Shown: one piece after another, positions 3,178 through 54,324 of the stretch
Numbering within the stretch: the first letter of the stretch is position 1
Layout: each line of letters starts with the position of its first letter
Virus record (IMG/VR): IMGVR_UViG_3300045971_000344
Coordinates: 1-64,000 of that record
Length of the DNA: 64,000 nucleotides
Direction: 5' to 3' (one strand)
Position numbers and translations under genes: made by a program
Notes under the pieces: model-generated
Told to the model about the DNA's origin: nothing
What the model saw: only the letters and a program-made list of their open reading frames with translations
The model's database searches: none

Positions 3178-4128
3178 GTGAGATCCGAACAAGAATTTTT
3201 GGATTTATCTGCACAGTTAGAAGAGGCAATCAGTTCTCAGAATGAGATGCAAAGACTATTATCTCATTACCAAGGATTAGCCGAACATTATCAGGACATT
3301 TTTAACCTAGCTCCTGTGGGCAAACTCATTTTAGACCTAAGAGGGAACATTCTCCGTGCCAATGATAAGGCTTGTGCGATATTAGGATGTAAAAAGGAAT
3401 TTGTGATTACAAAGTCTATATTCTCTTTTGTAAATACAAAAGGCTCTTCTGCGTTCTATGAAATGTTGCTAGAGCACTTCCATCATGTTAAGTTTGGAAG
3501 CACTGCAATAAGATGTGATGTGATGCTAAAAGCTAAGTGGTGTGCCTTCCATTCCAGTCTGTTTTCCGATGACCTGATTATGGTCACACTAATAGATATT
3601 ACTGACCGAAAAAACACTGAGCATAGAGTTATCCATAGCAGTACCCACGATAGTCTTACAGGGTTATACAATAGAGCCTTTTTTACTTCCGAACTTGAAA
3701 GACTATCTCTGAGTAGGCTATTTCCTATAACGATAGTAAGTTCAGATATTAATGAGCTTAAAAAGGTTAATGACACCAAAGGACATAAAGCGGGTGATGC
3801 CTTAATTAAGCGAGCCGCTTCCGTGTTAGTTGCCTCATTTAGAGCCGAGGATGTTGTTGCGCGTTTAGGCGGGGATGAGTTCATTGTTCTTCTCCCAACT
3901 ACCACTGAAGAACAAGCCCAGCATATTATTATTAGTTTGAAGAATAATCCTATCATTACTTCAGGTCAACTGAGTTTATCTATCGGTATAGCCACTGCGG
4001 ATTCACAAGACAAGTTGCATAGAGCCTTAAAATTAAGTGATAAACGAATGTACCAGGATAAGCAAAAGTATAGAGATAGGGTCAGTCAAGTAGTTCTTGG
4101 AGTGAACAATGGAAACTATAATCAATAA
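3178..4128 (+). CDS. PAS-domain diguanylate cyclase (GGDEF)
   Basis: HDSLTGLYNR, DINELKKVNDTKGHKAGD, RLGGDEF, RxxD I-site (RAED), SIGIA, SDKRMY; N-terminal coiled coil and PAS (IFNLAPVGKLILD...ANDKAC). Confidence 0.92.
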   Translation: MRSEQEFLDLSAQLEEAISSQNEMQRLLSHYQGLAEHYQDIFNLAPVGKLILDLRGNILRANDKACAILGCKKEFVITKSIFSFVNTKGSSAFYEMLLEHFHHVKFGSTAIRCDVMLKAKWCAFHSSLFSDDLIMVTLIDITDRKNTEHRVIHSSTHDSLTGLYNRAFFTSELERLSLSRLFPITIVSSDINELKKVNDTKGHKAGDALIKRAASVLVASFRAEDVVARLGGDEFIVLLPTTTEEQAQHIIISLKNNPIITSGQLSLSIGIATADSQDKLHRALKLSDKRMYQDKQKYRDRVSQVVLGVNNGNYNQ

Positions 4129-4276
4129 GTTGGGTTTAATACGATTATCCGCTGAGTTGTCTATTAAGGCACTTCAAATGGGTGCTCCTGTTGAAAGTAT
4201 TGAGCAATACCTTAACTCAATATCTGACAGTCTCTATAAAGTGCGAGAGTTATGCTCCAAAGGTGATAAGACATGA
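4109..4276 (+). CDS. Small hypothetical protein (55 aa)
   Basis: METIINKLG...KGDKT, with GGAG upstream; not in the supplied ORF track. Confidence 0.5.
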   Translation: METIINKLGLIRLSAELSIKALQMGAPVESIEQYLNSISDSLYKVRELCSKGDKT

Positions 4277-4407
4277 GGAATACAGGATTTGTTGCTATTT
4301 CCTATCTTAAAAAGGGTGATAATGGTTCCTGGGTTTGCTGTGGTAATAAGAATCCAGTCTATGCAAATGTATGTCTTATCTGTATGCGAAATAAGAATTG
4401 GAGGTAG
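4273..4407 (+). CDS. Small Cys-rich protein, RanBP2-like zinc finger (44 aa)
   Basis: W-V-C-C-G-N-K-N...C-L-I-C pattern; start overlaps upstream stop (ATGA). Confidence 0.45.
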   Translation: MRNTGFVAISYLKKGDNGSWVCCGNKNPVYANVCLICMRNKNWR

Positions 4408-4409
4408 CT

Positions 4410-4679
4410 ATGGACTGTAAAGGTTGTGGTAAATGCTGTGATATTACAAACGACCCTTATTTAGACGTAGAGTTGTTTGAGGAAGACAGGGTACCCATTT
4501 ATGGCCTGGAGTTTCGGTCATCTTCTGGACAATTTTACCTTAAAAGAAATCTTGATGGTACCTGTATTTTTCTAAATGAGAATAAAGAATGTGCTATCTA
4601 TAATGACCGACCTAGAGAATGTAGAGAGTTTACTCAAGAGCACTCAGTGTGTAAACGCTTAACAGGTAACGACTCATGA
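4410..4679 (+). CDS. YkgJ-family cysteine-cluster (CxxCxxCC) protein
   Basis: CKGCGKCC...CIFL...CAIYNDRPRECREF; ATG 4410 follows GGAGG. Confidence 0.85.
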   Translation: MDCKGCGKCCDITNDPYLDVELFEEDRVPIYGLEFRSSSGQFYLKRNLDGTCIFLNENKECAIYNDRPRECREFTQEHSVCKRLTGNDS

Positions 4680-5081
4680 CAAAAGATGAATTGCTTATAC
4701 ACCTTGAATACTGCATGGGCGATACAGAAATAATGGTTAAGATTGATGGCAGACTTTTACAGATTCAAGATGTTAACCACTACGCTCCAAAAGAGTCAAC
4801 AGCTAGATTTTTAATTTTAATACCAAATGAAAGAATACCTAGAAAATAGAGGTATGACTATTATGGATTTTTATATCGTCTTTACAGAACGTCAAAAGGA
4901 TAAAATAGAGCTTTGGAAGAAAACGTTACCAAAGTTAAAAGCAAAGGTTGTCCGATCTTTTGGAATAATCTTTGTTCCTACAGACAATGTAAATAAAGAT
5001 GGTAGAAGGATTTTTAAAGCCTACTTTAAAAGTTCTGATGGTCACAAATTTTTTGTGACTAAGAAAGCAATTTTACACTGA
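4676..5081 (+). other. Two small hypothetical CDS (4676..4849; about 4854..5081)
   Basis: Contiguous, coupled ORFs; no motifs. Confidence 0.5.
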
Positions 5082-5098
5082 TTAAGAAAGGATAACCC

Positions 5099-5755
5099 AT
5101 GTTGGTAACAAAAATATTTCGATTCGAGGCCTGCCATTCAGTAAAAGACGCATACACTTGTAGATGTGACAGAACGCGGACAGATAAATCTGCCGGGGGC
5201 TTACACGGACATTCTTATGTTGTAGAGCTCACCCTTGAAGGGGATGTGGCAAAATCAGATGGAATGGTTATTGACTTCACTCTTGTTAGGGAAACTTTTA
5301 ACCATATAATTGATGCTTTTGACCACACTCTTGTTATTGGGGATACTGATAAAGTAATGGCAACCCTAGGTCCCTACATCTCAGCTCGTTATATAATTTT
5401 CCCTGGTAATCCAACTGCAGAGAATATGGCTGAATACTTCTTTAACTATCTTGATAGTTATCTTACTGACAACTACCTTTTAGGCGTAAGTGTATTCTCA
5501 GTAACCGTGTGGGAAACCGTTACAGGGAAAGCGACTAAGGTAAGAGAGATAAAAGGAGTTTTACCCAGTGACTTGTATATTAGTCCTGCCTTAGCTTATG
5601 GTTGGTCAGACTATGATAAGAAGACTTTTGAGTATAACAACGGACATATTTTAGAAGAAAAGCAGCTGATAACAAACATAACTACCCTAGATACAACTGA
5701 TTCTGCTGGTACTACCCTAAATTTTACTGCTACTCTTGGAAATAAAAACTGTTAA
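5099..5755 (+). CDS. queD: 6-carboxy-5,6,7,8-tetrahydropterin synthase (QueD/PTPS)
   Basis: TKIFRFEACH...LHGHSY...GMVIDF...FDH...NPTAENMA...VWET. Confidence 0.9.
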   Translation: MLVTKIFRFEACHSVKDAYTCRCDRTRTDKSAGGLHGHSYVVELTLEGDVAKSDGMVIDFTLVRETFNHIIDAFDHTLVIGDTDKVMATLGPYISARYIIFPGNPTAENMAEYFFNYLDSYLTDNYLLGVSVFSVTVWETVTGKATKVREIKGVLPSDLYISPALAYGWSDYDKKTFEYNNGHILEEKQLITNITTLDTTDSAGTTLNFTATLGNKNC

Positions 5756-5793: not shown

Positions 5794-7161
5794 ATTAGAC
5801 TATTCAGTCCAGAAACAGAGTTTAGAGTAATAGCTTCTATCTGCAATTCTCCTCCTAATTCAGTTACTACTACCTTTCTTTTATCCAGAATTACTACTGA
5901 GCACTTTCATTTTGATCCAGCAAAAGCCGCTTTTAAGCGAATAATGAAGTTGATGCAAACTAGTGGTAATATTCCTGGGTATAGAGAGTTAGAAGCTGAT
6001 CCAATATTGGATGAAGGCTTTAGAGCAGAAATATCTGCGTATGATGATAAAAAGAAAAAGATAAGACAAGAGAAAACCGCTAAGGCGGTATTTGATCTCT
6101 TAGAAAGCTATAGAAAAAAGAGGGTACTGTATAACGTAGCAAAGTCTACAATAGATAAATTAAAAGGCGAAGCTGTAGATGTAGACAGCCTTATACAGGC
6201 AATGGGTGATAATTTAGCTGTTGCAACCTCGGCTGTCTCAACAATTGAACAACTTGTCCACATAGGAGAAGGTAACAACAGCGTTGAGCTCGTTAAAGAG
6301 ATACTAGATGGAGAAGGTTCTCCAACTATTCCAACAGGTTTTAAGACGTTTGATGATAAAAATGGAGGATTCTTTAAGCAGGCAGTTGCGGTATTATCTT
6401 CAAATAGTTCAGGCGGTAAGTCCGTTTGCGCACTTCAGATGGCAATAAATATGTACTGGGCAGGGCAAAGCACTTGCGTACTCTCCTTAGAGATGAGTAA
6501 AGACCAGTACATGGCACGTTTCTTATCTAACATAAGTGGTGTATCTGCCTCAAGAATATTTTTGAAGAAACTTACTGAAGACGAAAAGAATGAAATACGA
6601 GCTGCCTATAAAAAGTTTGTTATCTTCGGAAAGAAAAATAATGTACGATGGACAATACTAGCCCCTGAAACTGGTTTATCACTTGACCAGTTACTTATGA
6701 CTTGTAAGCCCTATAGCTTTGACGTAGTAACAATTGACTATGCTACCTTATTAGAAGAGGCTGATGTAGATAACCAAGCACGAGCTTTGGCCTCAATTAC
6801 ACGCCGTTGTAAAGTATTCTCTCAAGTATCAAAATGTCTAGTTATAGTACTAGCTCAGTTGTCTGATGATGGGTTTATAAAATACAGTAGGGCGATAAAA
6901 GAAAATGCGGACCACGTTTGGACCTGGACTTTTTCCGATACGGAAAGAGAAACTCATAATATAACAATAAAAGTTGATAAAGGTAGAAACCAAATGTGTT
7001 TTCCTTTTGAAGTTACTGAAGATTTCTCAACTATGAGAATTATAGATAATGGACCCGTAAGATCATTCGATGAAGATACTGAAAACGAATTTTCAACAAA
7101 AAAGAAAAAGAAAGAGAAAGAAGAACCTGAAGATGATTATTTAGCGGAGGACGATATCTGA
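5794..7161 (+). CDS. dnaB: DnaB-like replicative helicase (probable ATT start at 5794)
   Basis: IPTGFKTFD, SNSSGGKS (Walker A), LSLEMS, VTIDY, VLAQLS, IKENAD, VDKGRN. The frame is open 50 codons upstream of ATG 5944 to an ATT downstream of GGGGAGGTG. Confidence 0.88.
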   Translation: MRLFSPETEFRVIASICNSPPNSVTTTFLLSRITTEHFHFDPAKAAFKRIMKLMQTSGNIPGYRELEADPILDEGFRAEISAYDDKKKKIRQEKTAKAVFDLLESYRKKRVLYNVAKSTIDKLKGEAVDVDSLIQAMGDNLAVATSAVSTIEQLVHIGEGNNSVELVKEILDGEGSPTIPTGFKTFDDKNGGFFKQAVAVLSSNSSGGKSVCALQMAINMYWAGQSTCVLSLEMSKDQYMARFLSNISGVSASRIFLKKLTEDEKNEIRAAYKKFVIFGKKNNVRWTILAPETGLSLDQLLMTCKPYSFDVVTIDYATLLEEADVDNQARALASITRRCKVFSQVSKCLVIVLAQLSDDGFIKYSRAIKENADHVWTWTFSDTERETHNITIKVDKGRNQMCFPFEVTEDFSTMRIIDNGPVRSFDEDTENEFSTKKKKKEKEEPEDDYLAEDDI

Positions 7162-31927: not shown

Positions 31928-32101
31928 CTACTTTATACCTAAATTTTTACCTGAATTCCATTAAAATTAACCCGAATTCCATGAAAAAACCTCATAAAAT
32001 AACCCATTTCTATGGGTGTTTTATGCGATAAAAACCCCTTAGGGGTCAAAAACCGTAGTATTTTGCATAGGTTACCAAGAAAACGAACCTTTTAGGTAAT
32101 T

Positions 32102-32130
32102 TTGACATTTGGGTAAAAATTTGATAAAAT
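32102..32130 (+). promoter_or_regulatory. sigma70-type promoter
   Basis: TTGACA-17-TAAAAT with TGn extended -10. Confidence 0.8.
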
Positions 32131-32227
32131 AAAATTGAAGGGGAATAGAAAAAGGAATACATCACGAATTTTCGCAGATTTGCGAAATCATTACAAACCC
32201 AAAGAGTTGTACGAAAAGGAGATCATC

Positions 32228-33055
32228 ATGGCACGCACAGCAAAAATTTCGGCAATCGCAGCAGTTGAGACGCTCACATCTAACGCTACATCATCCAAAA
32301 AGGAGAACACCATGAAAACCAACGCTATCGAGATCATCTTCACCCCGGCCAAATCGCTTGTCGCTATCGTAAACCCCGCAACTCCGGCCGTTGTCGTTCC
32401 CGAAGTCGCAGTCGAAGCAGTTGCTCCGAAGCGCACCCGCAAAGCAAGAGTTGTTGCCCCGGTTGTGGTCGCAGTTGTTGAAGAGCCCAAGAAGCGCACT
32501 CGCAAGACAAACAAGATCGCAACTCCGGTTGAGGTCGCTGAAGTCGTGGTAGTCGCTCCGAAGCGTGAGCGCAAAGCAAAAGTCGGCGTTAACTTCGAGA
32601 ACGAACTCGGCATGATCTTCAAACCCGCATCGCAGTTCAAGAAAGCGCTGTCCGCAACTCCGGTAGTCGAGGTCGAGGCAGTTGCTCCGAAACGCACTCG
32701 CAAGTCCTCCAAGATCGCAACTCCGGCAGTCGAGGTTGCAGAAGTGGTTGTTGAAACTCCGAAGCGTGGTCGCAAGGCAAGAGTTGCAGTCGAAGTCGAA
32801 GTCGTAGCAGCTCCGGTATCGGCCAAAGTTATCTCGATGGACGAGCATCGCGCACGCCGCAGCATGAAGGCCCTGGCAGAAGTTTCGGAAAAAATCATCT
32901 CCGCAGATTCCGAAAAGGCAGCAAAAAAGTTCTTCAAGAAGTATGTTGCTGAAGTCGGTATCGAAGATGCAGCACGCAACCTGCGTTACATCCTCCGCAA
33001 GCTGAACTCCGAAAAAGCAACAGAGTTGTTCGCTCAGTACAGCGTTAACCAGTAA
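32228..33055 (+). CDS. Ala/Val/Pro/Lys-rich repeat protein (histone H1-like); second in-frame start at 32312
   Basis: VEAVAPKRTRK-type repeats; AAGGAG before both ATGs. Confidence 0.7.
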   Translation: MARTAKISAIAAVETLTSNATSSKKENTMKTNAIEIIFTPAKSLVAIVNPATPAVVVPEVAVEAVAPKRTRKARVVAPVVVAVVEEPKKRTRKTNKIATPVEVAEVVVVAPKRERKAKVGVNFENELGMIFKPASQFKKALSATPVVEVEAVAPKRTRKSSKIATPAVEVAEVVVETPKRGRKARVAVEVEVVAAPVSAKVISMDEHRARRSMKALAEVSEKIISADSEKAAKKFFKKYVAEVGIEDAARNLRYILRKLNSEKATELFAQYSVNQ

Positions 33056-33166
33056 CAGTTGTTCAACCTCGGCGAGAGGGAATGGTTTTATCTACATTCC
33101 CTCTCGACACTCTTTCATTTTCACTTATCGATCCATGCAGTACAAATTAACTAAAGGAGAATTATC

Positions 33167-34603
33167 ATGGCCAAGGTAAAGAAAATCAAGTGTATGATCT
33201 GTACAGACCCCTTTCAGGCAACAGAGTTGTTGTATAACGAAGCGCAGCACGGCATCAATGTTTGCCCCGAATGCGCCGCTCCGGCTGAGTCACGTGTCCT
33301 CGAAGAAAAGATCGCAGAGTTTATCGCTAAAAAGGGCATGAGCAAAAAGGCCGCCACGCAGAAAGCAAATGAACTGAATCTGGAAAAAGGCGTAGTCGCG
33401 CTCCTCACAGAAATCATCGAGTCGGACGATATGGACGAGAACGAAACTACCCCCGCAACTCTCGATCCTCATGATGACTTCGCCGATGAAGATATCGATC
33501 TGGGCGATGATGATGAAGACGAAACCAAACCCGCAACTCCGGAAGTTAAACCCTCGAAGGTCAATAAAAAAGAAAAGGAGATTTCAACCATGAGTGACAA
33601 CAGCAAACAGGCAATCAAAGATGCACGGACAGAGTTGAACGCAGTTAAGGCCAAGATCGCAGAACTGGAAGCAAAAGCCGCCGCCGGCAAAAAGGTCACC
33701 AAGGCATTGGCGACCGCTCAGGAAGAACTCAGCGCAGCTAAGGCAGCACTGAAAGAGTTGAAGGCCGATTCCAAGACCTCTGCTGCACCCGAAGTTGAAA
33801 CAACAACCCCGAAGGTTCGCAAGCAGAAAGACAGCGCCGCTCCAGCAGTTGAGGCAACCATCCAGGAAACGAATAAAACGACCGCAAAAACTCTTCGCGG
33901 TTACATCAGCGAAGCCAAGAACGACATTGAAACTCTGAAAGCTGAGTTGGAAACCGCCGGTGGTACGGACAAGAAGATCAGCAAGAAGTTGACTCACGAG
34001 CTCCTGCACCTGGAAAACTTGAAGGCGATGCTTAAAGATGTTAAGGGCGCATCTTCAGTAGGCGCACCCGCAACTCCGGCCCCGGTTGTCGACAACAAAG
34101 CGGCCCTGAAAGACGCTCGCGCCAACGTCCGCGAAGCACGCAACGCAGTAAAAGAGTTGAAGGCGCAGGTTGCCGCTGACCCCGACAATAAAAAGCTCAT
34201 CAAGAAACTGGCCGCAGCTATCGAGACCTTCAACGCCTGCAAGAGCACTGCAACAGAGTTGAAACCTCAGAAGGACTCAGCAGCTCCGAAGGCTGAAAAG
34301 GTTCCGCGGGCGCCTAAGGCAGATGCAACCATCGCAGAAACGTTCAGCATCGAACTCGAACTCAGCGGTAAGAAGTTGAACCGCGCAGTTGCCGAAGCGT
34401 TCTTCGCAGTTAAGGAGTCCCTGAAGCACATGAAAATTAAACCGGGTGTATCCGCGGCAGACATTTTCGAGAGCAACGCTACAGAGCAGATCGAAGCATC
34501 AATTTCGGAAATGGTCCTGCGGGCAGTAAAGAAACAACTCTCGGAGCAGGATTTCAATATCGGCCGCATCGTCCGCGCAGAGAAGAAATCCATCGGAGCA
34601 TAA
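33167..34603 (+). CDS. Zinc-finger plus helical-repeat protein; second in-frame start at 33590
   Basis: CMIC...CPEC, acidic linker, three Ala/Lys-rich helical repeats. Confidence 0.7.
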   Translation: MAKVKKIKCMICTDPFQATELLYNEAQHGINVCPECAAPAESRVLEEKIAEFIAKKGMSKKAATQKANELNLEKGVVALLTEIIESDDMDENETTPATLDPHDDFADEDIDLGDDDEDETKPATPEVKPSKVNKKEKEISTMSDNSKQAIKDARTELNAVKAKIAELEAKAAAGKKVTKALATAQEELSAAKAALKELKADSKTSAAPEVETTTPKVRKQKDSAAPAVEATIQETNKTTAKTLRGYISEAKNDIETLKAELETAGGTDKKISKKLTHELLHLENLKAMLKDVKGASSVGAPATPAPVVDNKAALKDARANVREARNAVKELKAQVAADPDNKKLIKKLAAAIETFNACKSTATELKPQKDSAAPKAEKVPRAPKADATIAETFSIELELSGKKLNRAVAEAFFAVKESLKHMKIKPGVSAADIFESNATEQIEASISEMVLRAVKKQLSEQDFNIGRIVRAEKKSIGA

Positions 34604-34732
34604 AATCATTCTGATCTGAATTGTGGGGGAGAGCGTTTTGGTGCTCTCCCCATTCAGAGTTTTTGGCTGTGGTAAGCGCCCTTTACAGGGCCTTTATCAG
34701 ATTCAAAAAACCTGAGAAATGAGGATTACACC

Positions 34733-35974
34733 ATGGGAAGAGGTTCCGTACTTAGAAACAGAACGCATCTGTCTGATGACACTGCAGTAGTCGAGGGATT
34801 TAAAAACTCCGCAGGGAAGGTTGTTATTCGGCTCACAGTAGAAAGCGATAAAGTAAATCCAGTAAAAGGTGAAAAGGACTTGCAGGTCATCGCGCTGTCA
34901 ATTGATGAAATGAAATACCTTTTGGAGTTTTTGGGGGATGCAGTAAAATCCGCAGAAAAACTTTTTGCATAAAAAAGGAGTATCAGATGACTAAAAAAGT
35001 AAATGCACCACCCGTCATTTTGTTAGTCGAAGAAGACCGCAAGAAAAAGATTCAAGATGCCTTTGCGGTTCTCCAGGATGTTGTTAAAAACCTGTCCCCA
35101 ACGCTGTCAACTCTGGTAAACCTTGAAAAGTCTGAATACAAGGAAGACGAGCAGTGTTTGGCGTTTGGGTCCTCTCCAGAGTTTAATTTGTACTACTACG
35201 TTAAGCCCGAGGGCTGTAAAAAACGGGTTTACCCAGAGTTTGAGTACTCTATCACCGTATTTGTGTCCACGTACTCTTATGAAGACGGACCATCTTGCGA
35301 TGAAGTCGATCTTGTAAATGCGGCTAACCCGTATGCACTGGTGAGGAGTTTCCTTATCGCCCTCGCAACAGAAGAAATTAACAATGCAGTTACAGCAAGC
35401 GCAGAATACGCTGAACATCTCGAAAATAAAAGAATGGAGGAACTTACTCATGGCGCCTAAGATTACGGAATTCAACAGACAGAACTGCAGGGAACTGAGT
35501 ACAGAGTTGTTGGGGTTCCTCACAAAGTTCGCTGAACAGCATGGTCTCACCGTTGTGGACGAAGGTGGCAAGTTTAACGCTACTACGTACACGCCCAAGT
35601 TCACCTTTCAGGTCCCAACCGAAAATTTGGGGGCAAAAAAGAACGTTGTGGATAAGACGTTCAACCCCAAAAACCCCGCAAACGGTACGATAACTGAGGC
35701 TCAAGCAAGATCAATAAACCCCGAGTACGTTGACTTCGCAGTGGGTAAAAAGGGCAGCAACAGGTCCTCATTTTATCTGTACGACAAGGCCCTTAAAAAG
35801 GGAATGACCGTTTTGGTGCATGATGGCTACGGTAAAGGAAAAGTGACCTTCAAAGTGGCCCGAATATCCTCAGTCGGGATGGATATGAGCGGTGAGAAAA
35901 ATTCAAAGGTAAGAGTGACCGATGGTGCGTACAGCTGGCGCATAGATTCCTGCTACATTATCCCTATCAAATAG
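34733..35974 (+). other. Three hypothetical CDS (34733..34972, 34987..35460, 35450..35974)
   Basis: ORFs each with GGAG-type RBS. Confidence 0.65.
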
Positions 35975-35986
35975 GGACCGAAAACC

Positions 35987-36048
35987 AACGGTTGTCAAAT
36001 TCCAATAATTTAAATGAATTTGACAACCGTTTCGCTGTATGTTATAAT
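35987..36048 (+). promoter_or_regulatory. sigma70 consensus promoter with a 15-bp inverted repeat over the -35
   Basis: TTGACA 36020-36025, 17 nt, TATAAT 36043-36048; AACGGTTGTCAAATT/AATTTGACAACCGTT. Confidence 0.85.
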
Positions 36049-36107
36049 GAAATTGAAGGGACAATCTGGAGAATAAACGTTCATTAAGAAGATTTAAGAA
36101 AGGAGAA

Positions 36108-36873
36108 ATGATGAAAAAATTGGTTTTTACGTCGGATTTTGTTTTGAACGGAAAGCAGTACTTTATCGGTGAGTGTAAGAGTTTTCACTCCGATGAAGAC
36201 GCGTCTGATTGGATGTCCAAGAGTTTTTTGCCCTCAGATTTCATTACCAATATTGTAGAAACCGCTGGTGCAGTAGTAGTGGATACCTCTGAACAGGATC
36301 TGCAGATTCTCCGGGCGATGGATAACCTTAAGGTTGATGTAGAAGAGTATAACAAAGAGTTTATGCAGGGCTACATTTCCGCCAATCAGTGCTGTCAGAA
36401 AATTATGCTGGCTTCGCTCAATGCAATGAATACTATCGACCATGCAGAAGCAGTTATGCTCTGCAAAGAAGACGATGCTCAGAAGAAGGTCAAAGAAGTC
36501 TTAAATAAAAGGAGGATTACCCCAAATGACCAAGCACAAGCTTAAGTTTGTTCTAAAAGAAATTGTGTATCGTATCCGGCGCAGGGTCCACATGAGTATT
36601 GAGTCCCTTAAACACTGGTTCGGTGTATACAACTCTACGAAGGTTGATGATCCGCATGAACTCAGAATGTGTAAGCATGCAATGGTTAATGACCCGAAGG
36701 CAGATGTAGCATACCGGTACTTCCGAATTGGTCATCGGTTCTTTTACAGAGATGAACTCCAACGCTTTTATGAGTACGATCCAGAGTTTATTGGGCAGAA
36801 AAATCAGAAGCATCAAGAGTGGATGGCAGTCGGTTTGGTTATTGCTTTAGGTTATATATTACTTCTTAGATAA
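36108..36873 (+). other. Two hypothetical CDS (36108..36545, 36526..36873)
   Basis: Strong RBS; the second ends in a hydrophobic segment. Confidence 0.65.
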
Positions 36874-36889
36874 AAGGGGGACCACGATT

Positions 36890-37363
36890 ATGGACGACCG
36901 GTTGTTTGATGCTCAAATGGAGTTTGTGGACAACGCTTTAGAAATCTTGGGGATTTGTGCCAAGAGAGATAAAGAACGCTCTGCGTCTACACTTACTGTA
37001 ACAGTATTTTATTCAAAAGAAATGCCTTGGCCCTTTACACCGGTGTACCCAGAGTTGACGCTGGAGAACTTGGAAGAGACTCATGTGGAGTTGATGGATC
37101 TGGTTATTCCTAATTCCACTGCCCCTGAGGTATCTCTGGAGGAGGTTTTTGTCCGTATGCAGAGCGATGTCTGGAGCCTTAACGGTGAGGCCAAGGAGCT
37201 TATACGGTCAAAAGGATTGGCCCATACCAGCATGTCCGTTGGGGATGTGGTAAAAACAAAGTCAAATATTCTGTATGTCTGTGAAGCGCACAGTTGGAGA
37301 AAAATCAAAAAGGAGAATCACTCAGATGACCAAAAAACTTGTGGAGTTGTTGAAGGCCCTTGA
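36890..37363 (+). CDS. YodL-like domain protein
   Basis: HTSMSVGDVV motif. Confidence 0.5.
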   Translation: MDDRLFDAQMEFVDNALEILGICAKRDKERSASTLTVTVFYSKEMPWPFTPVYPELTLENLEETHVELMDLVIPNSTAPEVSLEEVFVRMQSDVWSLNGEAKELIRSKGLAHTSMSVGDVVKTKSNILYVCEAHSWRKIKKENHSDDQKTCGVVEGP

Positions 37364-38425
37364 GGCAGATGAAACCATTGAACCTTGTCAGCATTTGACC
37401 GATGGTGGTCGAGGCGTAAATAACCTGATTGACGAGATTGAAGATGAGGCTTGTGTTCAGCTCATCCTCAGTACAGGTCAGCCTAACTTCCAGGCACATC
37501 GGCAATTGGAGTTGTCAGGGTACAAAGTATTTGCCGAGGAGAAAGACAGTTTCGGCTGGCTCACGGGTTGTATCCGGACGGCCAAGGGAATCATTGTTTA
37601 CGGGTGATCAAAGGTTGTAAACCCTATAGCGAGCACCAGATATTATGGACGGTATCTGGTGCTCGGTGAAGGGCGTACAACAAACAAAAGTACGTTACTT
37701 TCACGGCCATAATGAGCCACAGAAAAGGAGAAACATCATGAGTGAGATCGACAATGAGATTGAAAAACTAGAGGTTAGAATTAAGCACGGCGCAGAAGGA
37801 CCGGCACACGACCCGTACAGCTTCACCGAGTATTCGGCCACACTTAAAAATGGTCAGATCGTTACTCTTCATCTTGGACTTATGGAGTACATTCGGTTGG
37901 ACGGTACTGAAGTACACACTCAGTCGGAGCCATCTGTAGAGTTGTTCAAGAAACTGGTTGGTGTTGATCCGTTTGAAGCCGAAGAGGCTTACAACAACCC
38001 GCGCTGTAAAGATCACCCTGATGCGGATCTAGAATCAATGTCTGGCTATCCAGGTGAGACCTTTGCAATCTGTTCGGTCTGTAAGTGCGTTCTTGAGTGC
38101 TACTTTTCTGAATCGGCAATTATCTAAGAAAGGAGTATGATCCATGTTACCCAAAATGTTCAAGAATAGCATTTGTGGTGAGGTTGAGATTGATGAAGAA
38201 GATAAATTCAGTATGCCCGTTGTTTTGATTTCTAAGGATATTAAGGTGGGAATGAGATATAATTCCTACGTTATTCGTAAGGATACTATTGCCAGGATAA
38301 TGGAGCAGGACGGTGATGATGCTGTATTGCTCGTAAACTCCAATAAAATGTTTGGCTGGACCTCATTGAAGGAAAACACAAACTATCGCCCTATCGGAAT
38401 TCATAACCAAATAGTGGAGGTATGA
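37326..38425 (+). other. Three hypothetical CDS (37326..37607, 37738..38127, 38144..38425)
   Basis: ORFs with AAGGAG RBS. Confidence 0.65.
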
Positions 38426-38891: not shown

Positions 38892-41690
38892 ATGAACTCA
38901 AAAGACAAGATTGAACGCCATAATGCTATCGCTGCACATGCCAATGCACTGGAAACATTATCCGAGCAATTTATTGATGGCACAATATCTGATATTCAGT
39001 TGTTATGTGCCCAAATGCAGTCCTGCCTCAATACTCTTAAGGTTCTTACAAAGGAGAATTAAACCATGAACTCAAAAGTAGTTCTTAACTCAGCGATTCA
39101 AGGAGCCTCTGCAGATTTTAAAATGCAGGGCCTGCAACTCTATAGTCGATTTTTGTCTATCGTTGCAGGTATGGACCCAAAACCTGTTAGAGGGGGATTG
39201 GAGAGACACCTCAATACTTTTCTTGCGGCACAGGACATTTTGGAAGGAAGTGACCTGTATTCAGAGGTTTGGGCGCAAAAAGAACACCTGGATACCATTT
39301 CATCCGCCACAGCAATAGAAGTAAAAAGTTGGAAGGAATTACCGGATTCAGCTGATGTAGAGTTGTATATAAGCTCTGATGAACAGTTGCGGTATGTTCG
39401 TTGGAAAGCTGGTGATAATACGGATAAACAACCACCAAAGGTTTTGTACCGTGCGCCTGCCTGGGTATGGCAGTTGTACCAACAGGGCTTCGATAAAGGG
39501 TTTAAGATAAGGAGGAAATTATGAACTATTTTATAGACCATCCTATAAATCCTCGGCCAGCCAATGTGGGAAAAGTTGTATCACGCTGAGATCAAAAGGC
39601 CTACAGGCTTCACCTACTGAAAGGAGAACAAGTATGCGGTCAATAGCAATAGTATTAGGTGATAACGATTTTGGTTCAATGTTTCGAGGTCTTCTGGAAA
39701 CAATGGTCAACTTCTTTATTTATCATGACGGTACGAAAGGAATAACTGAAAATAACATTCGGCTGCTTATAAAAGAGGGCCTGAGGTTTCATTATCTTGC
39801 GTATCAGACACGCTGGGACATGCAGGTAAAGGAAGCTAAGGATCAACCTCTTTCAGGTGTACATGAAAAAGAGTTGCAACGAGTTGTAGATTACCTTCTT
39901 TATGGTAATATGCCAAATAAGAATTATAATCATCTTCGCATCTTGTTTGACAATGATGCAGATGCCGCCTTTAATACGGAAGACCATGATGGTGGTGCCT
40001 GGCATTTGGATATCAAAAGCGGACAAATAAATTCATTTTAAAGTGAGGAGTGACTTATGAAAACAAGGATCAAGCGAGTTATAACTACTTTTTCGTATCC
40101 AGGATTGGCATCTTCGGAAAATGACGTTGTACCCAGAGAGTACTTTTTCAGTACGGATGACTGTCAGCCCACAGGAAATCTTCCGTACAACCCGTATAGA
40201 AATTTGGTTTTACACTCACTGGAGATACCTCATGAAATTAATCCAAAGCTTGATGATCTTAAAGGGTCCACAATAAAGATAATCACCTCAATAGAAGAGT
40301 ATCAGTTAGCCTGTCATCCAAATGACACCTTGGTTGCTAATCCAGATTCTAAGTATAAAATTCCAGAGGAAGAACTGTTATTAACTGTTAAGAGGAACAG
40401 ACACTGATATCTTGCTCTGGGAAGAGATGAAGAAAAAAGTGAGGAGATAGCTATGAGAGCACCTATGAAGGAAAAACGGATCAGGAAGCGACCTGCCACT
40501 AATAAGAATCCTACCAAACGGGCAGACGCTCTGCACACCCAATTGGGTAACGTTCTGTTTGCTATTAACAACTCTACAGACGACGTTAAATCCTGTCTGG
40601 TCCAGATGCTTTATGCGGATGCTACAGATGATCTGCGCTATGAGCGCTGGAACCAAGCAATGCTCGACGCTATAAACTTCATAGAGGCACCCAAGCAGGA
40701 TGAATACGATGGACGTTTCCCTTAAGGGGAAAAGGGGGTTGAACCAAATGAAATTAGTACGAGTTTCTATTTTCCGAAAAGGTACAACTACTGAGGGAAA
40801 ACTGTTTGGCTTGTTTATGAATGAAGAACGAGCCAAACAGTATATAAATAATAGTATCAGTAAGTATTTTGGTCGGCCAATTCAGCTCCGCTGGACCAAA
40901 GGTAAAGATGAAGTTACCGCGCGTTCTCAGAACTTGAGAGTTCATTCAAAAGCTTTTGGTGATAAGGTGAATCCAAATAGTTATTTCTTGTGGGCAGATG
41001 ACTATGAAAGTCATGCCGTCCAGTGCACCTGTGGTCATGCGGCCCGATTAATCCAGGGACATAGTCGGTATCAATGCCTTAATTGTTACTCTGATATTTA
41101 TTACAATGTCTGTTGGAGTTGCGGGGCTACCATTGACAGCCGGGTAAATAAAGGACGATGTGGGTGCTGTGGATACTTTTATTGTACCTGTGGCGCTCAT
41201 AGTCAGTATTGTGATTTACTTATGTACTCTCACTAGAAAGGAAGAACTGACTATGATAACAAAATTGATTATTGAAAAGTCTAAACGCGGGTTACCAGTG
41301 GCCTGGGAACAAGGAGGGTCGTATTCCAATACTGGAAATGCAACCATAATAACAGATGAATTTGGTAAGCCACAGCACTCTATCTATGTACGGCGTTCCG
41401 GTAGCTTGGCTTGTGAGAAACACGCCTTGATCCCGATTAAGCTCGGTTCTGTAATAATTAGTGCTTCTCATCACCGAGAGGACTTTACGGTAAATATTTA
41501 TCGAGTCGTTGACTTCACAACTGAAGAACACTATGAAACAGCCACTTTAGAAGTTATTGATACTTTTGATAAAGGTGAGTGGAATAAAGAAGACTCACCA
41601 GGAGTGTTCAGTGATGCTGTTAGAGTTGTTAAGAAAAAAGCGTTGACCTATCATTGTAGAGTACCCATGTATATAACCAATAACCAATAA
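38892..41690 (+). other. Run of hypothetical CDS (38892..39062, 39066..39524, 39634..40041, 40057..40407, 40453..40725, 40748..41236 Cys-rich, 41253..41690)
   Basis: Tightly packed ORFs with RBS. Confidence 0.6.
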
Positions 41691-41706
41691 CCAAAAGGAG
41701 AAACGT

Positions 41707-42570
41707 ATGAAGACAGGTCCAAAATCGCTAGCAATAAGTTTACACCCGGTAGCTTCTGCATTAATCAAGGCCCAGAAGACCGCAAAATGGCTGGGCAAGT
41801 CCACGTTCAGGCATACAAATAACGGTCAGAAAATGTTTCTCGACCACTTATCCAGTTTGGTTAAGGACTCAAAGAAAATTCCTGAAATGAAGTCCCTGGT
41901 ATCCGCCGACCCAGAAAAGATAAAAGAGTTTTTGGGGTCCAACGGAAAGACAAAGAGTACTAAGATAACCGAGAGCGACCACGAATGGTACGCTGCGGGA
42001 ATGTTTGAAATCTTTCTGACATGGAAAGAAAAGGGAGAAATCCTTAACCTAAAATTTGACGGCAAGAACGTTAAAGGGTCATACCTTAAGAATTGTTTGG
42101 TTTCAAAAGGTATGGTCAGCATTGAGACGAAGTCAGGCGATATCGCCTTCATGAAGATCGGTAAGGTCGATACTGAGCTTGATTTATACTCGCAGGTTAT
42201 TGACCTCATGGTCAGTACCCCTGTAAAAGGAGCTGAAAAGGTTGATGTCCATTTTCCGTTTGTTAAGCTCAACCTGGATTCAGAGTTTAAATGGATGAAG
42301 GGTCTTAATCTCAATCCAGAATCCGGTAAGGGAATTGACCACCCAGGGTATTTTGTTAAGCGCGCTCTTACCCATAACGAGCTCGATATTGACAACACCG
42401 GGGCGCGTATCAAATCCTCTGCAGTTGTAACCATGAGAACAAAAGGCCTGGCTCCCCCAAAGCCTAAGGTTGTAAAAATAGATTCACCCTTTCTTTTTTG
42501 GGTCATCCGACCAGGTTGTGACCTTCCAATTTTTGTTGCCTACGTAAACACTGACTCCGTTGTTTCTTAA
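41707..42570 (+). CDS. Serpin-like protein (shortened)
   Basis: VDVHFPFVKL...HNELDIDNTG-RCL-KVVKIDSPFLFWVI...PIFVAYV matches the serpin s5A/RCL/s1C/s4B/s5B order. Confidence 0.65.
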   Translation: MKTGPKSLAISLHPVASALIKAQKTAKWLGKSTFRHTNNGQKMFLDHLSSLVKDSKKIPEMKSLVSADPEKIKEFLGSNGKTKSTKITESDHEWYAAGMFEIFLTWKEKGEILNLKFDGKNVKGSYLKNCLVSKGMVSIETKSGDIAFMKIGKVDTELDLYSQVIDLMVSTPVKGAEKVDVHFPFVKLNLDSEFKWMKGLNLNPESGKGIDHPGYFVKRALTHNELDIDNTGARIKSSAVVTMRTKGLAPPKPKVVKIDSPFLFWVIRPGCDLPIFVAYVNTDSVVS

Positions 42571-42621: not shown

Positions 42622-42660
42622 AATCTTTAATGAAAATAATTTTTGAATAAAATCAAATAT

Positions 42661-42689
42661 TTGACAGGTCAATTTTTCTATGTTATAAT
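42661..42689 (+). promoter_or_regulatory. sigma70 consensus promoter
   Basis: TTGACA-17-TATAAT. Confidence 0.88.
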
Positions 42690-42753
42690 GAATTACGGGG
42701 ATAATCCGGGGAGAAATTCAACATTAAAATTGATGAACAATGAAAGGGGGTAC

Positions 42754-43645
42754 ATGATGAGTAAAGAGTTTGAAGCACCGGCGATTCTGAAACTGTATGT
42801 TAAGCCGGATTGTGAGGCCTTCATTTCCAGAGTTGGCTTTCCTACGGATGCAGAGGCCTCAGAGTTTGCGGCCCACTGGATGAAAGATGGACACTCAGTC
42901 TCTTGGGTCAAGTGCGGCCAAAGTGGTCCGTCTGTCCAGACAAACAAAACCATGATGGAGCTTGCTGCGTCTTTGGTTAATCAAGACGACCATGAAGAGC
43001 CGAAGTGCATTATCTGCGGAACGCTTCATCCAGAGGTTGCACTTGTTACGGGTCCAAATGCTTGGCTTATAATACCTCATTCAGTGCTTGGTTATGCCTC
43101 TGTCTGTCCTGATTGCAATGACGGTAGTTTTAGAACGGAGGTGGGGTCCAGATGAGTCATGTAAAATCAAGTGAACTGGAGTTGTTGGTCTCACAGTTTA
43201 AGTCCAAGGAAATAGATCTTGAAAACTTTTTAGAGATTGCTTCTGATATTGAGTGCCCCAATTGTGGGTGCTCTGGGTTAGACGGAGAAATTACGGATAC
43301 CGATGAAAAAGACCTTCATTCGGCTACCGCTGAGTATTCCTGTAATGAGTGCAACAAATACTCTTTTAGTATCTACGTTCTTATGTCTGACAACTCTGTT
43401 ACTCTTGTGGAGGATTGATCCAAATGAAACATCCTCAAACAGTATGGACAAACGGCAAAATTTCTCTTGGTAACGACCTCATATTTGGACCTGTAGTATT
43501 AACCGAAGAGGGCTGGCATCCAGTTGATGACGTAGACGATAGCGGACTTGAACTTATTCTTAAACTTATTGACAACAACCCCGGGTGTCTGTTTTTGGAC
43601 AAAATTCGAGAAATTAAGTTGAAAAGAAAGGAGGAGTCGGGATGA
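42754..43645 (+). other. Three small CDS (42754..43155 and 43152..43418 with CxxC pairs; 43415..43645)
   Basis: Coupled ORFs. Confidence 0.6.
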
Positions 43646-44931: not shown

Positions 44932-46098
44932 ATGAAAAGAATTCAGGTAAGGGTACCTATCTCCAGGCATTCAAAAGTATTTTTAAAGTGTGTTGCTTCG
45001 GCTGACCCTTATAAGGCAATAAGGACAATTACTCATAAACAACCTTTGTTAATTTTTTGGGTTAGTCCAGAAGGGGCGGTAGTTGATGCCAACCCAGCAC
45101 ATAGAATTTCTCCTCCTAATGGAGACCCCTCTATTTTTGGGTCCAAGACACACAAGGGTTATTTAAGAGGAAGGGCAGCATATTTAGGTAACGTGGTCTA
45201 TATAGTTATTTACGGAACTGAGGACCGCAAACTAACTAATCAGCAGTTGGCCCTACTTCGTAGATCAGCTCCAAGATTAATTGATGAAATAAGTAAAAGG
45301 GTTGTAAATCCTGAAGAAGCCTATTCCTCAATCTTTATAGATGAAACTGGAGAGGACCTTGTAGTATAACCTAACAAAAGGAGAGTAAACCGTATGAGAG
45401 CATCAAATGAATTGTCGGCAATGGTGAGTGTATTTAACAAGGGCAATGCAACAGCAAAAGACGTTCTAGAGTTGTGGGAAAAAGAAGTTTGTCCGGATTG
45501 TGGGGCAGAGCTTGAGGGCGAAGTGGATGACTACACAGATGAAGAGCTCGATGACCTTGCGGTTAACGGAACGGTGTGGTGCAATAATTGCGACAACGGT
45601 GAACTTGATCTGAGCATCCGCTACAAACCGGCAAAGAATATTCACAAAGCAGTTCTGACAGATGCCGAGGAAGAAGAAGATGAAGAAGACTATGGGGATG
45701 AAGAGGACGAGGACGAAGATGAAAACTACCTCAACCCAGATGGATCGCATAAAAACCTGAGATCGGTTCATGGGCTTGCAACCTTGCTCCATCAGATCTT
45801 CACTGATGAAAACAACAACTCCGGAAGTAGTGCATACCAAGAGCTTCATCTTGGTGTTGACAGTGGGATAGTGGATCTGGTTATGAATGACGAGTATGAA
45901 GGCCCTCATGGTGAACCCACGCCATTCCCTGTGGACGCCCTGAATGAAGAGTTTTGGAATGGGGATTACATACCCAAGCTGGAAGTCGTGGATAACAGCG
46001 CCCTTGATTACTACATCGTCCGAATAAAAGGTCAACCCAGTGGTATCCTTGTAACAACCCTTATGGTTGAGTCCGCCCTCGAAACTCTTGAAGGTTAA
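44932..46098 (+). other. Two hypothetical CDS (44932..45369; 45394..46098 with zinc ribbon and acidic tract)
   Basis: ORFs with RBS. Confidence 0.65.
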
Positions 46099-47384: not shown

Positions 47385-48956
47385 ATGGAAACTACAAAAC
47401 AGAAAATTACGTGGCGTGAAGCAGTTAAACTGGCAAGGGTTCAGAACGTTCAGGCCATAAAAGAGGCAGGGACTATTGTTGTTTCGGATGGACTTTCAAT
47501 TTCGGCAGTATCTATGGGACTCAATAAGTGGGATTATTATAAATCGGGATCCGAGGTGTTCATTACAGAAAGTGATACTCCCGAAGTTGTACCGGCAGTA
47601 GTAGAAGAAAACAAATGGAAGCATATAAATATGCCAACGCTGAACAGTATACTGGAATCTTCCAGAATAGCAGAACCTGAAAAATACGAGGGACTTCGCG
47701 GTAGTTCAGCTTATCGTAGGCTTCGTGATAGCGGTGATGAAATAACTCTCAGGAACGGTATTAAGATACGAAAGATCGTAACCGAAAAGACTGGTACGAA
47801 GTATGAAATGCTTGAACCTGAGCAGGACCTGACAGATCCTATTGTCCAGTTATTTATTGGCACCAATGGGTCTTCTGTTATTCAGACTCCATCCGGTACA
47901 GAGTTGCTGCTCCAGCAGATGGAAGTAATGTTGGAATCAGGGCTCGGAGACCGTGAATATAGAAGCCATGACTTTGATGAAGACAACTATGATGAAGACG
48001 ATGAAGATGAGGATTATGATGGCAATGGGTCTGGTAGACCACCTCGTGCCAAATTATCCTGGTCTAAAGAAGCGCTGATTAAGCGCGCGGCAAATTCAAT
48101 AGTCATAACACCGGATATTTACTTCCAGTTTGTTAAGTCAAAAATGACGGACCTGCAACTGGAAGATCTTACTGATAGACTACGCAAACTCTCAGTGTTG
48201 GTAAAGCAGGCGGACGAGATCGGGCAGACCGCAGTATATGAATCACTTGCACTTCAGATAGCGATAATCGCCAGGGAGCAAGAGGCTGCCTCAATAGGTT
48301 GCGGTAAAAGGATTGACGTTAACACTGTTAAACACTTCATTGGAAAAATAGAGGGCAAAACTATAAAGTTCGATGACTTTGAGAACTTCCCTCGAATCGT
48401 TCCTGTAGAAATCGCTACCCGGATCAAAGCAGTAAGGGAAACAAAAGTGTTTGACAAATATAAAATTGTCTATGTTGACTATACAAAGGAGAAGGTTGAG
48501 ACGAATGAGCAAAAAATAAGGACGAAAGATCCTATCCTGTTTGGGACCTTTGACCACGAACCTCAAAAACTCTATTTTATTATCGACTGGATTGATGAGT
48601 ACTGTGACCTTACATTAGATAAAATGGTTGGTACTCTTTCAGCGCATGACCCCAATTTTGCTCTTGACCAGGTCCCTGACCTTGATAAGGACTTCATTAA
48701 GCGTACACTGGATGATGTGGAAGCGCGCCACTTGAGGCTGAAAAATACCAATTCTCGAAATTATAAACAACTGATGAGAGAAGAAGAGCAGGCAAGAGAA
48801 GACCGAAGAGAAGCTCTTCGAGAGCGTAATGAGCAATTAAGCGCAGAGCTGGCGTCTGTTCCCTTAGTTGAAGAAGGACAGAACATACCTAAAACAGATA
48901 ATGAAGGAAAAAGCTTCTTGAAACGCCTTGCGGCTCTTTTTACCAAAAAGGAGTAG
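47385..48956 (+). CDS. Large hypothetical phage protein
   Basis: 523-aa ORF; C-terminal KDPILFG...YFIIDWIDEYCDLTL block. Confidence 0.7.
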   Translation: METTKQKITWREAVKLARVQNVQAIKEAGTIVVSDGLSISAVSMGLNKWDYYKSGSEVFITESDTPEVVPAVVEENKWKHINMPTLNSILESSRIAEPEKYEGLRGSSAYRRLRDSGDEITLRNGIKIRKIVTEKTGTKYEMLEPEQDLTDPIVQLFIGTNGSSVIQTPSGTELLLQQMEVMLESGLGDREYRSHDFDEDNYDEDDEDEDYDGNGSGRPPRAKLSWSKEALIKRAANSIVITPDIYFQFVKSKMTDLQLEDLTDRLRKLSVLVKQADEIGQTAVYESLALQIAIIAREQEAASIGCGKRIDVNTVKHFIGKIEGKTIKFDDFENFPRIVPVEIATRIKAVRETKVFDKYKIVYVDYTKEKVETNEQKIRTKDPILFGTFDHEPQKLYFIIDWIDEYCDLTLDKMVGTLSAHDPNFALDQVPDLDKDFIKRTLDDVEARHLRLKNTNSRNYKQLMREEEQAREDRREALRERNEQLSAELASVPLVEEGQNIPKTDNEGKSFLKRLAALFTKKE

Positions 48957-54185: not shown

Positions 54186-54272
54186 GGGCGAGTAGTCGAA
54201 TGGCATAGACAAAGGATTTAAAATCCTTGGCCCGTAAGGGAGTGATGGGTTCAAGTCCCTCCTCGCCCACCA
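54186..54272 (+). tRNA. tRNA-Leu (anticodon UAA), CCA encoded
   Basis: GGGCGAG/CTCGCCC acceptor stem, AAGGA-TTTAAAA-TCCTT anticodon arm, long variable arm, GTTCAAGT T-loop, ACCA end. Confidence 0.95.
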
Positions 54273-54295: not shown

Positions 54296-54324
54296 TTGAC
54301 ATTTAATATCAGCTATGTTATAAT
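54296..54324 (+). promoter_or_regulatory. sigma70 consensus promoter
   Basis: TTGACA-17-TATAAT; leader similar to that of the 42661 promoter. Confidence 0.88.

Follow-up and report, generated by a model that had tools for sequence, protein, structure and literature searches.

A compact serpin encoded by a large phage, a candidate inhibitor of a host protease

The serpins of animals, plants, and poxviruses are textbook examples of inhibitors. The poxvirus serpins, such as CrmA/SPI-2 and myxoma Serp-3, are encoded by the virus, are smaller than cellular serpins, and block host death proteases inside the infected cell. The superfamily also has noneukaryotic members, and the characterized prokaryotic serpins (thermopin, tengpin, miropin, chloropin, and siropins) are full-length proteins of ~370 to 420 amino acids (aa) and are in many cases secreted or directed at extracellular proteases. 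Among phage proteins, T4 PinA is an inhibitor of the Lon protease. In bacteria, gasdermin and related defense operons use trypsin-like proteases with CARD-like domains, and T4-like phages set off gasdermin-type defense through RIIB, while a phage CARD-only protein blocks it (PMC10312443). The DNA analyzed here (the window) covers the initial 64 kb of an IMG/VR virus record (IMGVR_UViG_3300045971_000344), which is 294,944 bp long and rated 100% complete. According to the list of open reading frames (ORFs) and their translations, its plus strand carries at positions 41707 to 42570, stop codon included, a gene for a 287-aa protein, P0001, which belongs to the serpin superfamily by fold and by profile homology.

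P0001 has the same fold as the canonical inhibitory serpins PAI-1, alpha1-antitrypsin, and antithrombin (PF00079, MEROPS I4), with Z scores of 16 to 18 over ~250 aligned residues. From helix F to the C terminus, its elements follow one another as in these serpins, and it likewise has the P15 Gly hinge, an exposed loop of the same length, and the P-F-L-F of strand 4B; a basic P1 residue is shared with PAI-1 and antithrombin. It differs from them in being ~90 residues shorter, in having Asn at P17, Ala at P14, and Ile at P12 of the hinge, in its predicted cytoplasmic location, and in being encoded by a phage. The prokaryotic serpins are also among its structural matches (Z scores of 12 to 16). 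The sequence of P0001 alone matches the Pfam Serpin family (PF00079) with 15 bits and an E value of 0.014, short of the gathering cutoff of 27, and the match is confined to residues 212 to 280, corresponding to profile positions 301 to 367 of 370. Against the sequences of solved structures, P0001 alone gave weak matches to the bacterial serpin tengpin (E value of 0.05), and no family matched it in PHROGs or NCBIfam. A word search found six relatives, three of which (P0003 to P0005) pass the Pfam Serpin model with 27.1 to 28.5 bits in the same C-terminal part. A seven-sequence family profile matched 99 solved serpin chains with a best E value of 4.3e-7, and a later family profile matched 75 such chains with a best E value of 3.9e-9, serpins filling the top ranks. 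Pfam Serpin was matched at an E value of ≤0.01 by 93 of 114 sampled relatives, C-terminally only. For profile comparison, five canonical serpins of 374 to 545 aa from ultrasmall genomes were used, and hhalign aligned the family to canonical serpins over 216 columns (E value of 8e-6), with residues 64 to 280 of P0001 colinear with residues 119 to 368 of a 374-aa serpin.

Structure prediction gave the same assignment. A first AlphaFold model (pLDDT of 61) reached a Z score of 17.5 to latent PAI-1, and in a wide search independent of Foldseek all 29 chains with Z scores of ≥8 were serpins, the next unrelated fold having a Z score of 3.5. A better model, built from a 114-sequence alignment (pLDDT of 86.3, pTM of 0.83), aligned 254 residues to cleaved PAI-1 with a Z score of 18.3 and a root mean square deviation (rmsd) of 3.7 Å; all 415 chains with Z scores of ≥2 also reached ≥8, and the best 50 of these 415 were all serpins. 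A sequence-only reading of this locus had called the protein serpin-like and had proposed AlphaFold modeling and a structure search as a check; the check was run and a serpin fold was predicted, with the Z scores of 17.5 to 18.3 to solved serpins and the family profile matches bearing out the name. The same reading had seen serpin order in the C-terminal half. That observation stands and was too narrow, since the structural alignments to serpins span residues 2 to 287 and the whole protein follows this order.

The protein was also noted to be short, which is correct and is typical of a compact clade rather than a sign of a gene defect. An exhaustive profile search returned 1,952 representative clusters at an E value of ≤1e-3, 1,253 at ≤1e-10, and 612 at ≤1e-30, and the best 150 clusters were mostly of 280 to 305 aa and matched P0001 end to end. 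P0001 is a member of a large clade of ~290-aa compact serpins comprising at least 612 clusters at an E value of ≤1e-30. Because the best relatives are equally short and match from end to end, the short length is a hallmark of the clade, and a truncated or broken serpin, which was considered, is ruled out by the hundreds of relatives of the same length. Length, deletions, and the hinge consensus G-A-R-[AVI]-[EKQ]-S-A are common to P0001 and the clade. P0001 and its closest relative, P0002, differ from the remaining members in lying on a very long branch, and most of the others with a readable context are found in cellular DNA, in genomes of 0.7 to 1.1 Mb. The canonical serpins of ultrasmall genomes are longer, with 374 to 545 aa compared with 287 aa for P0001.

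Alignments indicate where the missing residues lie. In structural alignments, model residue 2 or 3 lies opposite residue 44 of alpha1-antitrypsin, 27 of PAI-1, 71 of antithrombin, and 21 of ovalbumin, directly past helix A, and helix A is absent, which makes P0001 ~25 residues shorter. The protein begins instead with strand 6B and helix B (residues 8 to 25, positions 41728 to 41781), as assigned by DSSP from the AlphaFold model. The next 13 residues (26 to 38) occupy the place of canonical helices C and D and strand 2A, leaving a three-residue strand. A forced global hhalign alignment, of low confidence, puts the helix of residues 39 to 55 on helix E and residues 59 to 66 on strand 1A (positions 41821 to 41904 together). 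There are ~37 fewer residues between helices B and E, and the elements lost there would be helices C and D and most of strand 2A; ~33 residues are trimmed from later loops, for a protein ~90 residues shorter overall. From here on, the colinear segment of residues 64 to 280 includes helix F (residues 69 to 78, positions 41911 to 41940), placed by hhalign against canonical serpins and carrying the family motif IN.(F/W). It also includes strand 3A (residues 95 to 106, positions 41989 to 42024), which in the family alignment, the model, and hhalign ends at the nearly invariant Trp106, the counterpart of the conserved serpin Trp that follows this strand, and an L-P-x-F-type motif of strand 2C. The same hhalign segment takes in strand 5A (residues 216 to 228, positions 42352 to 42390), which runs into the hinge according to the AlphaFold models and HMMER alignments to PAI-1, then the hinge itself, and the P-F-L-F-W motif of strand 4B (residues 261 to 265, positions 42487 to 42501), a set of nearly invariant columns located by alignments to tengpin, antiplasmin, and PAI-1. 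The full canonical set of elements (helices A to I and a five-stranded sheet A) is not found, and the model has four helices of at least four residues. CrmA lacks helix D, and its deleted elements overlap those of P0001 only in part.

The compact serpin gene is a genuine gene encoding a complete folded protein, and no alternative genetic code had to be assumed. A direct reading of the sequence finds a Shine-Dalgarno sequence, AAGGAG (positions 41695 to 41700, plus strand), 6 nucleotides (nt) upstream of the ATG, which constitutes a strong ribosome-binding site. A 226-aa ORF on the minus strand (positions 41826 to 42506) was considered and set aside as a shadow, the plus-strand gene being the conserved one. 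Longer members of the clade carry no informative fused domain, except for one fusion to a WGR domain (P0120, 367 aa). Separately, an ESM Atlas cluster of Bacillota proteins, which are 608 aa long and carry sigma-70 regions 2 and 4, contains a part that resembles the compact model (TM score of 0.65 by query).

The hinge and reactive-center loop occupy residues 232 to 247 (positions 42400 to 42447), with the sequence G232-A-R-I-K-S-S-A-V-V-T-M-R-T-K246-G247. HMMER and hhalign place this segment on the hinge and reactive-center loop of solved and canonical serpins, in agreement with the position and numbering proposed from the sequence: with Gly232 as P15, Ile235 is P12, Lys236 is P11, Arg244 is P3, Lys246 is P1, and Gly247 is P1'. 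The agreement goes well past what chance would give. The distance from the P15 Gly to the P-F motif is 29 residues in P0001 and 30 in a canonical prokaryotic serpin, with a family mode of 27 to 28. The P15 Gly is invariant (114/114 family members), and Ala is found at P14 in 103. Elsewhere in the clade, P17 is Glu in 74 of 114 members (Asn in P0001), P13 is Arg, Lys, or His in 97, P12 is Ala, Val, or Ile in 101 (Ala or Val in 91), P11 is Glu, Lys, or Gln in 111, P10 is Ser in 100 and Asp or Glu in 8, and P9 is Ala in 99. No charged residue is among those tallied at P14, P12, P8, P6, and P4, charges being concentrated at P13 and P11, and in P0001 the inward-facing positions P14, P12, P10, P8, P6, and P4 are uncharged throughout. 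This alternation of charge gives the periodicity expected for a strand that inserts into sheet A. Column entropy averages 1.39 bits over P17 to P7 and 3.08 bits over P6 to P3', the average over the entire protein being 2.25 bits. Arg or Lys occurs at positions +12 to +14 from P15 in 103 of 137 members (75%), whereas ~28% would be expected from composition. The commonest basic position is +13 (72 members), followed by small residues; P0001 has Arg244 at +12, Lys246 at +14, and Gly247 at +15. In the better model, P15 to P8 form a strand beside strand 5A, the sole stretch of low pLDDT is residues 241 to 252, the proposed loop tip, and the top structural matches are serpins in the cleaved or latent state, in which the loop is inserted.

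With these features, the clade bears the marks of inhibitory serpins, namely, an invariant P15 Gly, a conserved hinge, a variable tip, and a basic residue near P1. For P0001, the hinge periodicity, variable tip, and basic residues near P1 are the sequence features that favor a putative role as a protease inhibitor or decoy. The canonical inhibitory hinge was taken as Glu at P17, Gly at P15, Thr or Ser at P14, and small residues at P12 to P9. P0001 agrees with this consensus at P15 (Gly), P10 (Ser), and P9 (Ser) and departs from it at P17 (Asn), P14 (Ala), P12 (Ile), and P11 (Lys); the clade as a whole comes nearer to it, with mostly Glu at P17 and mostly Ala or Val at P12. The Ile and Lys had been flagged in the sequence-only reading as unlike inhibitory serpins. 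They do depart from the canon; within the clade they are normal, since P12 is usually Ala, Val, or Ile and P11 faces outward, and this objection is mostly answered, with the reservation that Ile at P12 could still slow insertion.

The same departures at P17, P14, and P12, together with a scaffold that has no helix A and apparently neither helices C and D nor strand 2A, would also suit a serpin-fold protein that does not inhibit proteases and instead binds a ligand, DNA, or some protein of host or phage or serves as a chaperone, as do ovalbumin, maspin, HSP47, and vaccinia K2. These four and PEDF, all of them noninhibitory, occur among the structural matches, and the very long branch of the phage copy suggests that its function may have changed. 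However, the hinge is among the best-conserved segments of the clade, with strict inward and outward periodicity, and the tip is variable and rich in basic residues, a pattern expected for loop insertion and protease specificity and superfluous for a mere binding scaffold. We regard a noninhibitory role as an unlikely explanation that nonetheless deserves serious consideration.

Members of the clade were found at eight loci of metagenome-assembled genomes (MAGs) labeled as Woesearchaeota, Pacearchaeota, Aenigmatarchaeota, Paceibacterota, "bacterium," and "uncultured Gammaproteobacteria." The five MAGs examined are of 0.7 to 1.1 Mb, with one copy of the compact serpin each. The neighbors are clearly cellular at three loci (L003, L008, and L009), including, for example, gyrase A, topoisomerase I, PGK, ribosomal protein S1, and ABC transporters. 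Two loci lie amid small ORFs on the same strand that resemble phage-like runs, one with an M50B peptidase (L002) and the other with an ABC transporter and a zinc peptidase (L005), and at L007 the neighboring genes match no family. Further sampled contexts comprised two that are cellular, one that is phage-like, and one contig too short to call, and the context of P0003 is cellular. Occurrence is patchy: of two phyla for which 401 genomes each were searched, one gave ~6 full-length matches and the other 3. Across the eight MAG loci and the window, no neighbor gene is conserved that would give a clue to a partner protease. The label "uncultured Gammaproteobacteria" given by NCBI to L005 (genome G001) is probably wrong, judging from its GTDB class, whose sampled genomes are of 0.5 to 1.8 Mb. 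One MAG locus (L006) has compact serpin genes in tandem, at 3612 to 4499 and ~4583 to 5437; these are ~30 to 37% identical to each other's nearest relatives and would represent an old duplication with divergent loops.

A scan of IMG/VR with alignment A5 found compact serpins in the accessory regions of two large, unrelated phage contigs of 435 kb and 152 kb, while a scan with the close-relative alignment A1 found nothing. In a FastTree tree, these two other phage copies nest in different clades, and P0001 and P0002, which are 48 to 50% identical, lie on a very long branch with a stem of 1.85 changes per site, the divergence being real and the placement unreliable. P0001 is 25 to 31% identical to all relatives except P0002, which is encoded on a 2-kb contig without detectable synteny with the window and retains the same hinge. 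The nearest ESM Atlas cluster, annotated as "Serpin domain-containing protein" (312 aa, 119 members), was matched both by features (0.99) and by shape (TM score of 0.81, rmsd of 2.4 Å, 259 residues), and Uroviricota is its commonest labeled phylum. Among GenBank phages, no DNA match to the serpin region was found; protein queries with P0001, P0003, and the L020 serpin detected no short serpin in 50,697 GenBank phage records, and a canonical serpin query against the same records returned only two unannotated fecal "Bacteriophage sp." contigs. A BFVD search with the model retrieved serpins of eukaryotic viruses only. The best BFVD match is A0A481Z725 of Pithovirus LCPAC201 (657 aa; TM score of 0.77 by query, E value of 1.7e-14), which is mislabeled "Sine oculis-binding protein" and may hold a compact serpin domain; if so, it would extend the clade to giant viruses.

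The very long branch, the identity of 25 to 31% to all relatives but one, and the absence of the gene from related phages would all fit a recently acquired, functionless passenger that is drifting. Against this, the frame is intact and full length and has a strong ribosome-binding site, all the nearly invariant residues of the C-terminal core (G232, A233, P261, F262, W265, R268, and P274) are kept, P0002 at 48 to 50% identity retains the same hinge, and the fold is predicted with confidence. We regard a passenger gene as the least probable of the explanations considered.

At positions 5944 to 30984 (plus strand), the window encodes a T4-like replication and recombination module with a DnaB-like helicase, a gp32-type single-stranded DNA-binding protein, UvsX, an SbcC/gp46-like protein, and a Dda-like helicase. 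UvsX is ~40 to 44% identical to those of Phage NCTB and of jumbo phages of Erwinia, Pseudomonas, and Dickeya, and because these are its nearest relatives, the host is likely Gram negative. The compact serpin is absent from these nearest UvsX relatives among GenBank phages. Three perfect sigma-70 promoters (TTGACA-17-TATAAT with a TG extended -10) are found in the window, compared with 0.01 expected by chance, all on the plus strand, at positions 36020 to 36048, 42661 to 42689, and 54296 to 54324. They share a longer motif, ATTTGACA ... TATGTTATAATGAA, and look like a family of early phage promoters read by the sigma-70-type host polymerase. The first is the nearest strong promoter upstream of the serpin gene and is the probable start of its transcription unit, and the second, 91 nt past the serpin stop codon, opens the next unit. 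The serpin gene is the last ORF between these two promoters, with one weak terminator-like site in between, and is likely expressed early in infection. A weak promoter-like site (9/12) just upstream of the gene (positions 41626 to 41654, plus strand) is uncertain, as such sites occur no more often than in shuffled sequences. With its position at the end of a unit between early-type promoters, amid ORFs that belong to no family, and its absence from the nearest GenBank phages, the gene may be an early accessory gene, the timing being read from motifs.

A role outside the cell, in which the inhibitor would be released at lysis or carried on the virion and would shield particles or progeny from external proteases, would agree with the many characterized bacterial serpins that target extracellular proteases. 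P0001, however, has no signal peptide, since its very first residues belong to strand 6B and helix B, and the gene lies in a probable early, nonstructural region. This makes an extracellular role very improbable.

Profile searches of the whole 295-kb phage genome, which has a single serpin copy, detected no Trypsin_2 (S1), subtilase (S8), or caspase-family (C14) protease. The sole protease-like signal is a subthreshold match to a T4-type prohead protease (S77) at ~101.4 kb, with an E value of 0.025. P0001 might accordingly be imagined to delay or restrain the phage's own maturation protease. The serpin gene, however, is far from the S77 locus and belongs to a probable early unit rather than to the late structural genes, and the closest relatives by replication genes lack any serpin, yet they must process their heads. 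Furthermore, serpins are not known as inhibitors of assemblin-fold S77 proteases. We give very little credence to a phage protease as the target.

Considering these alternatives, we lean toward P0001 being an inhibitory serpin directed at a host Lys/Arg-specific protease. P0001 would be produced inside the infected bacterium, in the cytoplasm, and probably at an early stage of infection. The target protease would cut the exposed loop after a basic residue, which would be Lys246 by canonical counting or, alternatively, Arg244, and the acyl-enzyme would be trapped as the loop enters beta-sheet A to form an added strand. The target would probably be a Lys/Arg-specific serine or cysteine protease of the host, because no protease of the trypsin, subtilisin, or caspase type is encoded by the phage itself. 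In this scheme, we infer the suicide inhibition, the cytoplasmic location, the early timing, and the host target. Under the favored subhypothesis, the target would execute or activate an abortive-infection defense; alternatively, it might be a housekeeping protease. That the target belongs to an antiphage defense system is speculative, and an antidefense role is plausible given the probable early unit, the lack of a signal peptide, and the lack of an S1, S8, or C14 protease of the phage's own. T4 PinA and the phage CARD-only protein resemble the role proposed for P0001 in being phage accessory proteins that neutralize a host protease or a protease-driven defense; they differ in having unrelated folds and in acting by binding or competition rather than as a covalent suicide trap. 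The CARD-only protein may serve as a functional precedent for an antiprotease role and is not evidence for P0001.

Several points weigh against an inhibitory, antidefense P0001. By itself, the protein scores under the Pfam Serpin threshold. Asn at P17, Ala at P14, and the bulkier Ile at P12 could, judging from canonical serpins, slow insertion and favor substrate behavior. Loop insertion is a prediction of AlphaFold, compatible with real insertion, and the putative early timing is read from promoter motifs. No studied serpin is known to combine the absence of helix A with that of helices C and D and the greater part of strand 2A, and survival of the spring mechanism in such a pared-down scaffold may be in doubt. 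In addition, no protease or defense gene is a conserved neighbor in any relative examined, and most relatives with a readable context are in cellular DNA, which argues that the ancestral role of the clade was not antidefense.

A more specific possibility is that P0001 is the phage counterpart of CrmA, an irreversible trap of a Lys/Arg-specific host protease that activates gasdermin or other suicide effectors, with a CARD-linked trypsin-like protease or a caspase- or metacaspase-like protease as the possible target. Cleaved CrmA is a structural match to the first model (Z score of 9.3), and myxoma M152R is among the BFVD matches. CrmA is cited as a caspase inhibitor (PMC8233489). CrmA/SPI-2 and Serp-3 differ from P0001 in belonging to eukaryotic viruses, CrmA has Asp at P1 and targets caspases, and the poxvirus serpins have no special sequence kinship to P0001, being no closer than other serpins. 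We consider a true CrmA counterpart rather unlikely.

The remainder of the window offers several observations. The small ORFs around the serpin gene have no informative Pfam match. Small ORFs rich in cysteine pairs of the zinc-ribbon-like CxxC type lie at positions 40700 to 41236, 42643 to 43155, 43152 to 43418, and 45394 to 46098 (plus strand), and the cysteine-rich ORFs near the serpin gene gave only weak hints of DUF5651, CpXC, and DUF7351. A 523-aa ORF (positions 47385 to 48956, plus strand) matches a PHROGs transposase family (E value of 1e-29) and is possibly a mobile element in the phage genome. A tRNA-Leu gene with anticodon TAA (positions 54186 to 54272, plus strand) is directly upstream of the promoter at 54296, and near-perfect promoter sites are found at 32102 and 60525. 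The G+C content is 0.44 to 0.49 at positions 32001 to 38000, compared with 0.35 to 0.41 on both sides, and this part may be a foreign island; the large ORFs within it, at 32135 to 33055 and 33167 to 34603, have no assigned function, and the second has no PHROGs match.

Neither the serpin mechanism nor the existence of viral serpins is new, but no description was found of a phage-borne member or of the pared-down architecture. A full-text literature search returned no paper with "phage serpin" or "phage-encoded serpin," serpins are unmentioned in the phage-genomics literature searched, and the word serpin does not occur in a study comparing 224 jumbo phages. A 2021 phylogeny of the serpin superfamily dropped sequences more than 25% below the median length, a filter that would leave the compact clade outside it (PMC8233489). 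The ~290-aa clade contains hundreds of sequence clusters, yet no PHROGs or NCBIfam model matched. It illustrates how much of the serpin scaffold can be dispensed with, which bears on serpin folding, the spring mechanism, and the engineering of small serpins. If P0001 inhibits a host protease, a covalent suicide-substrate mechanism would join the known phage countermeasures, and the protein would provide a handle for discovering the protease-based host system that it targets. If P0001 were in fact a counterpart of CrmA, the conflict between a viral serpin and a host death protease would take place in bacteria as it does in animals, and the ~290-aa clade would represent a minimal working serpin scaffold exchanged by mobile elements and ultrasmall cells.

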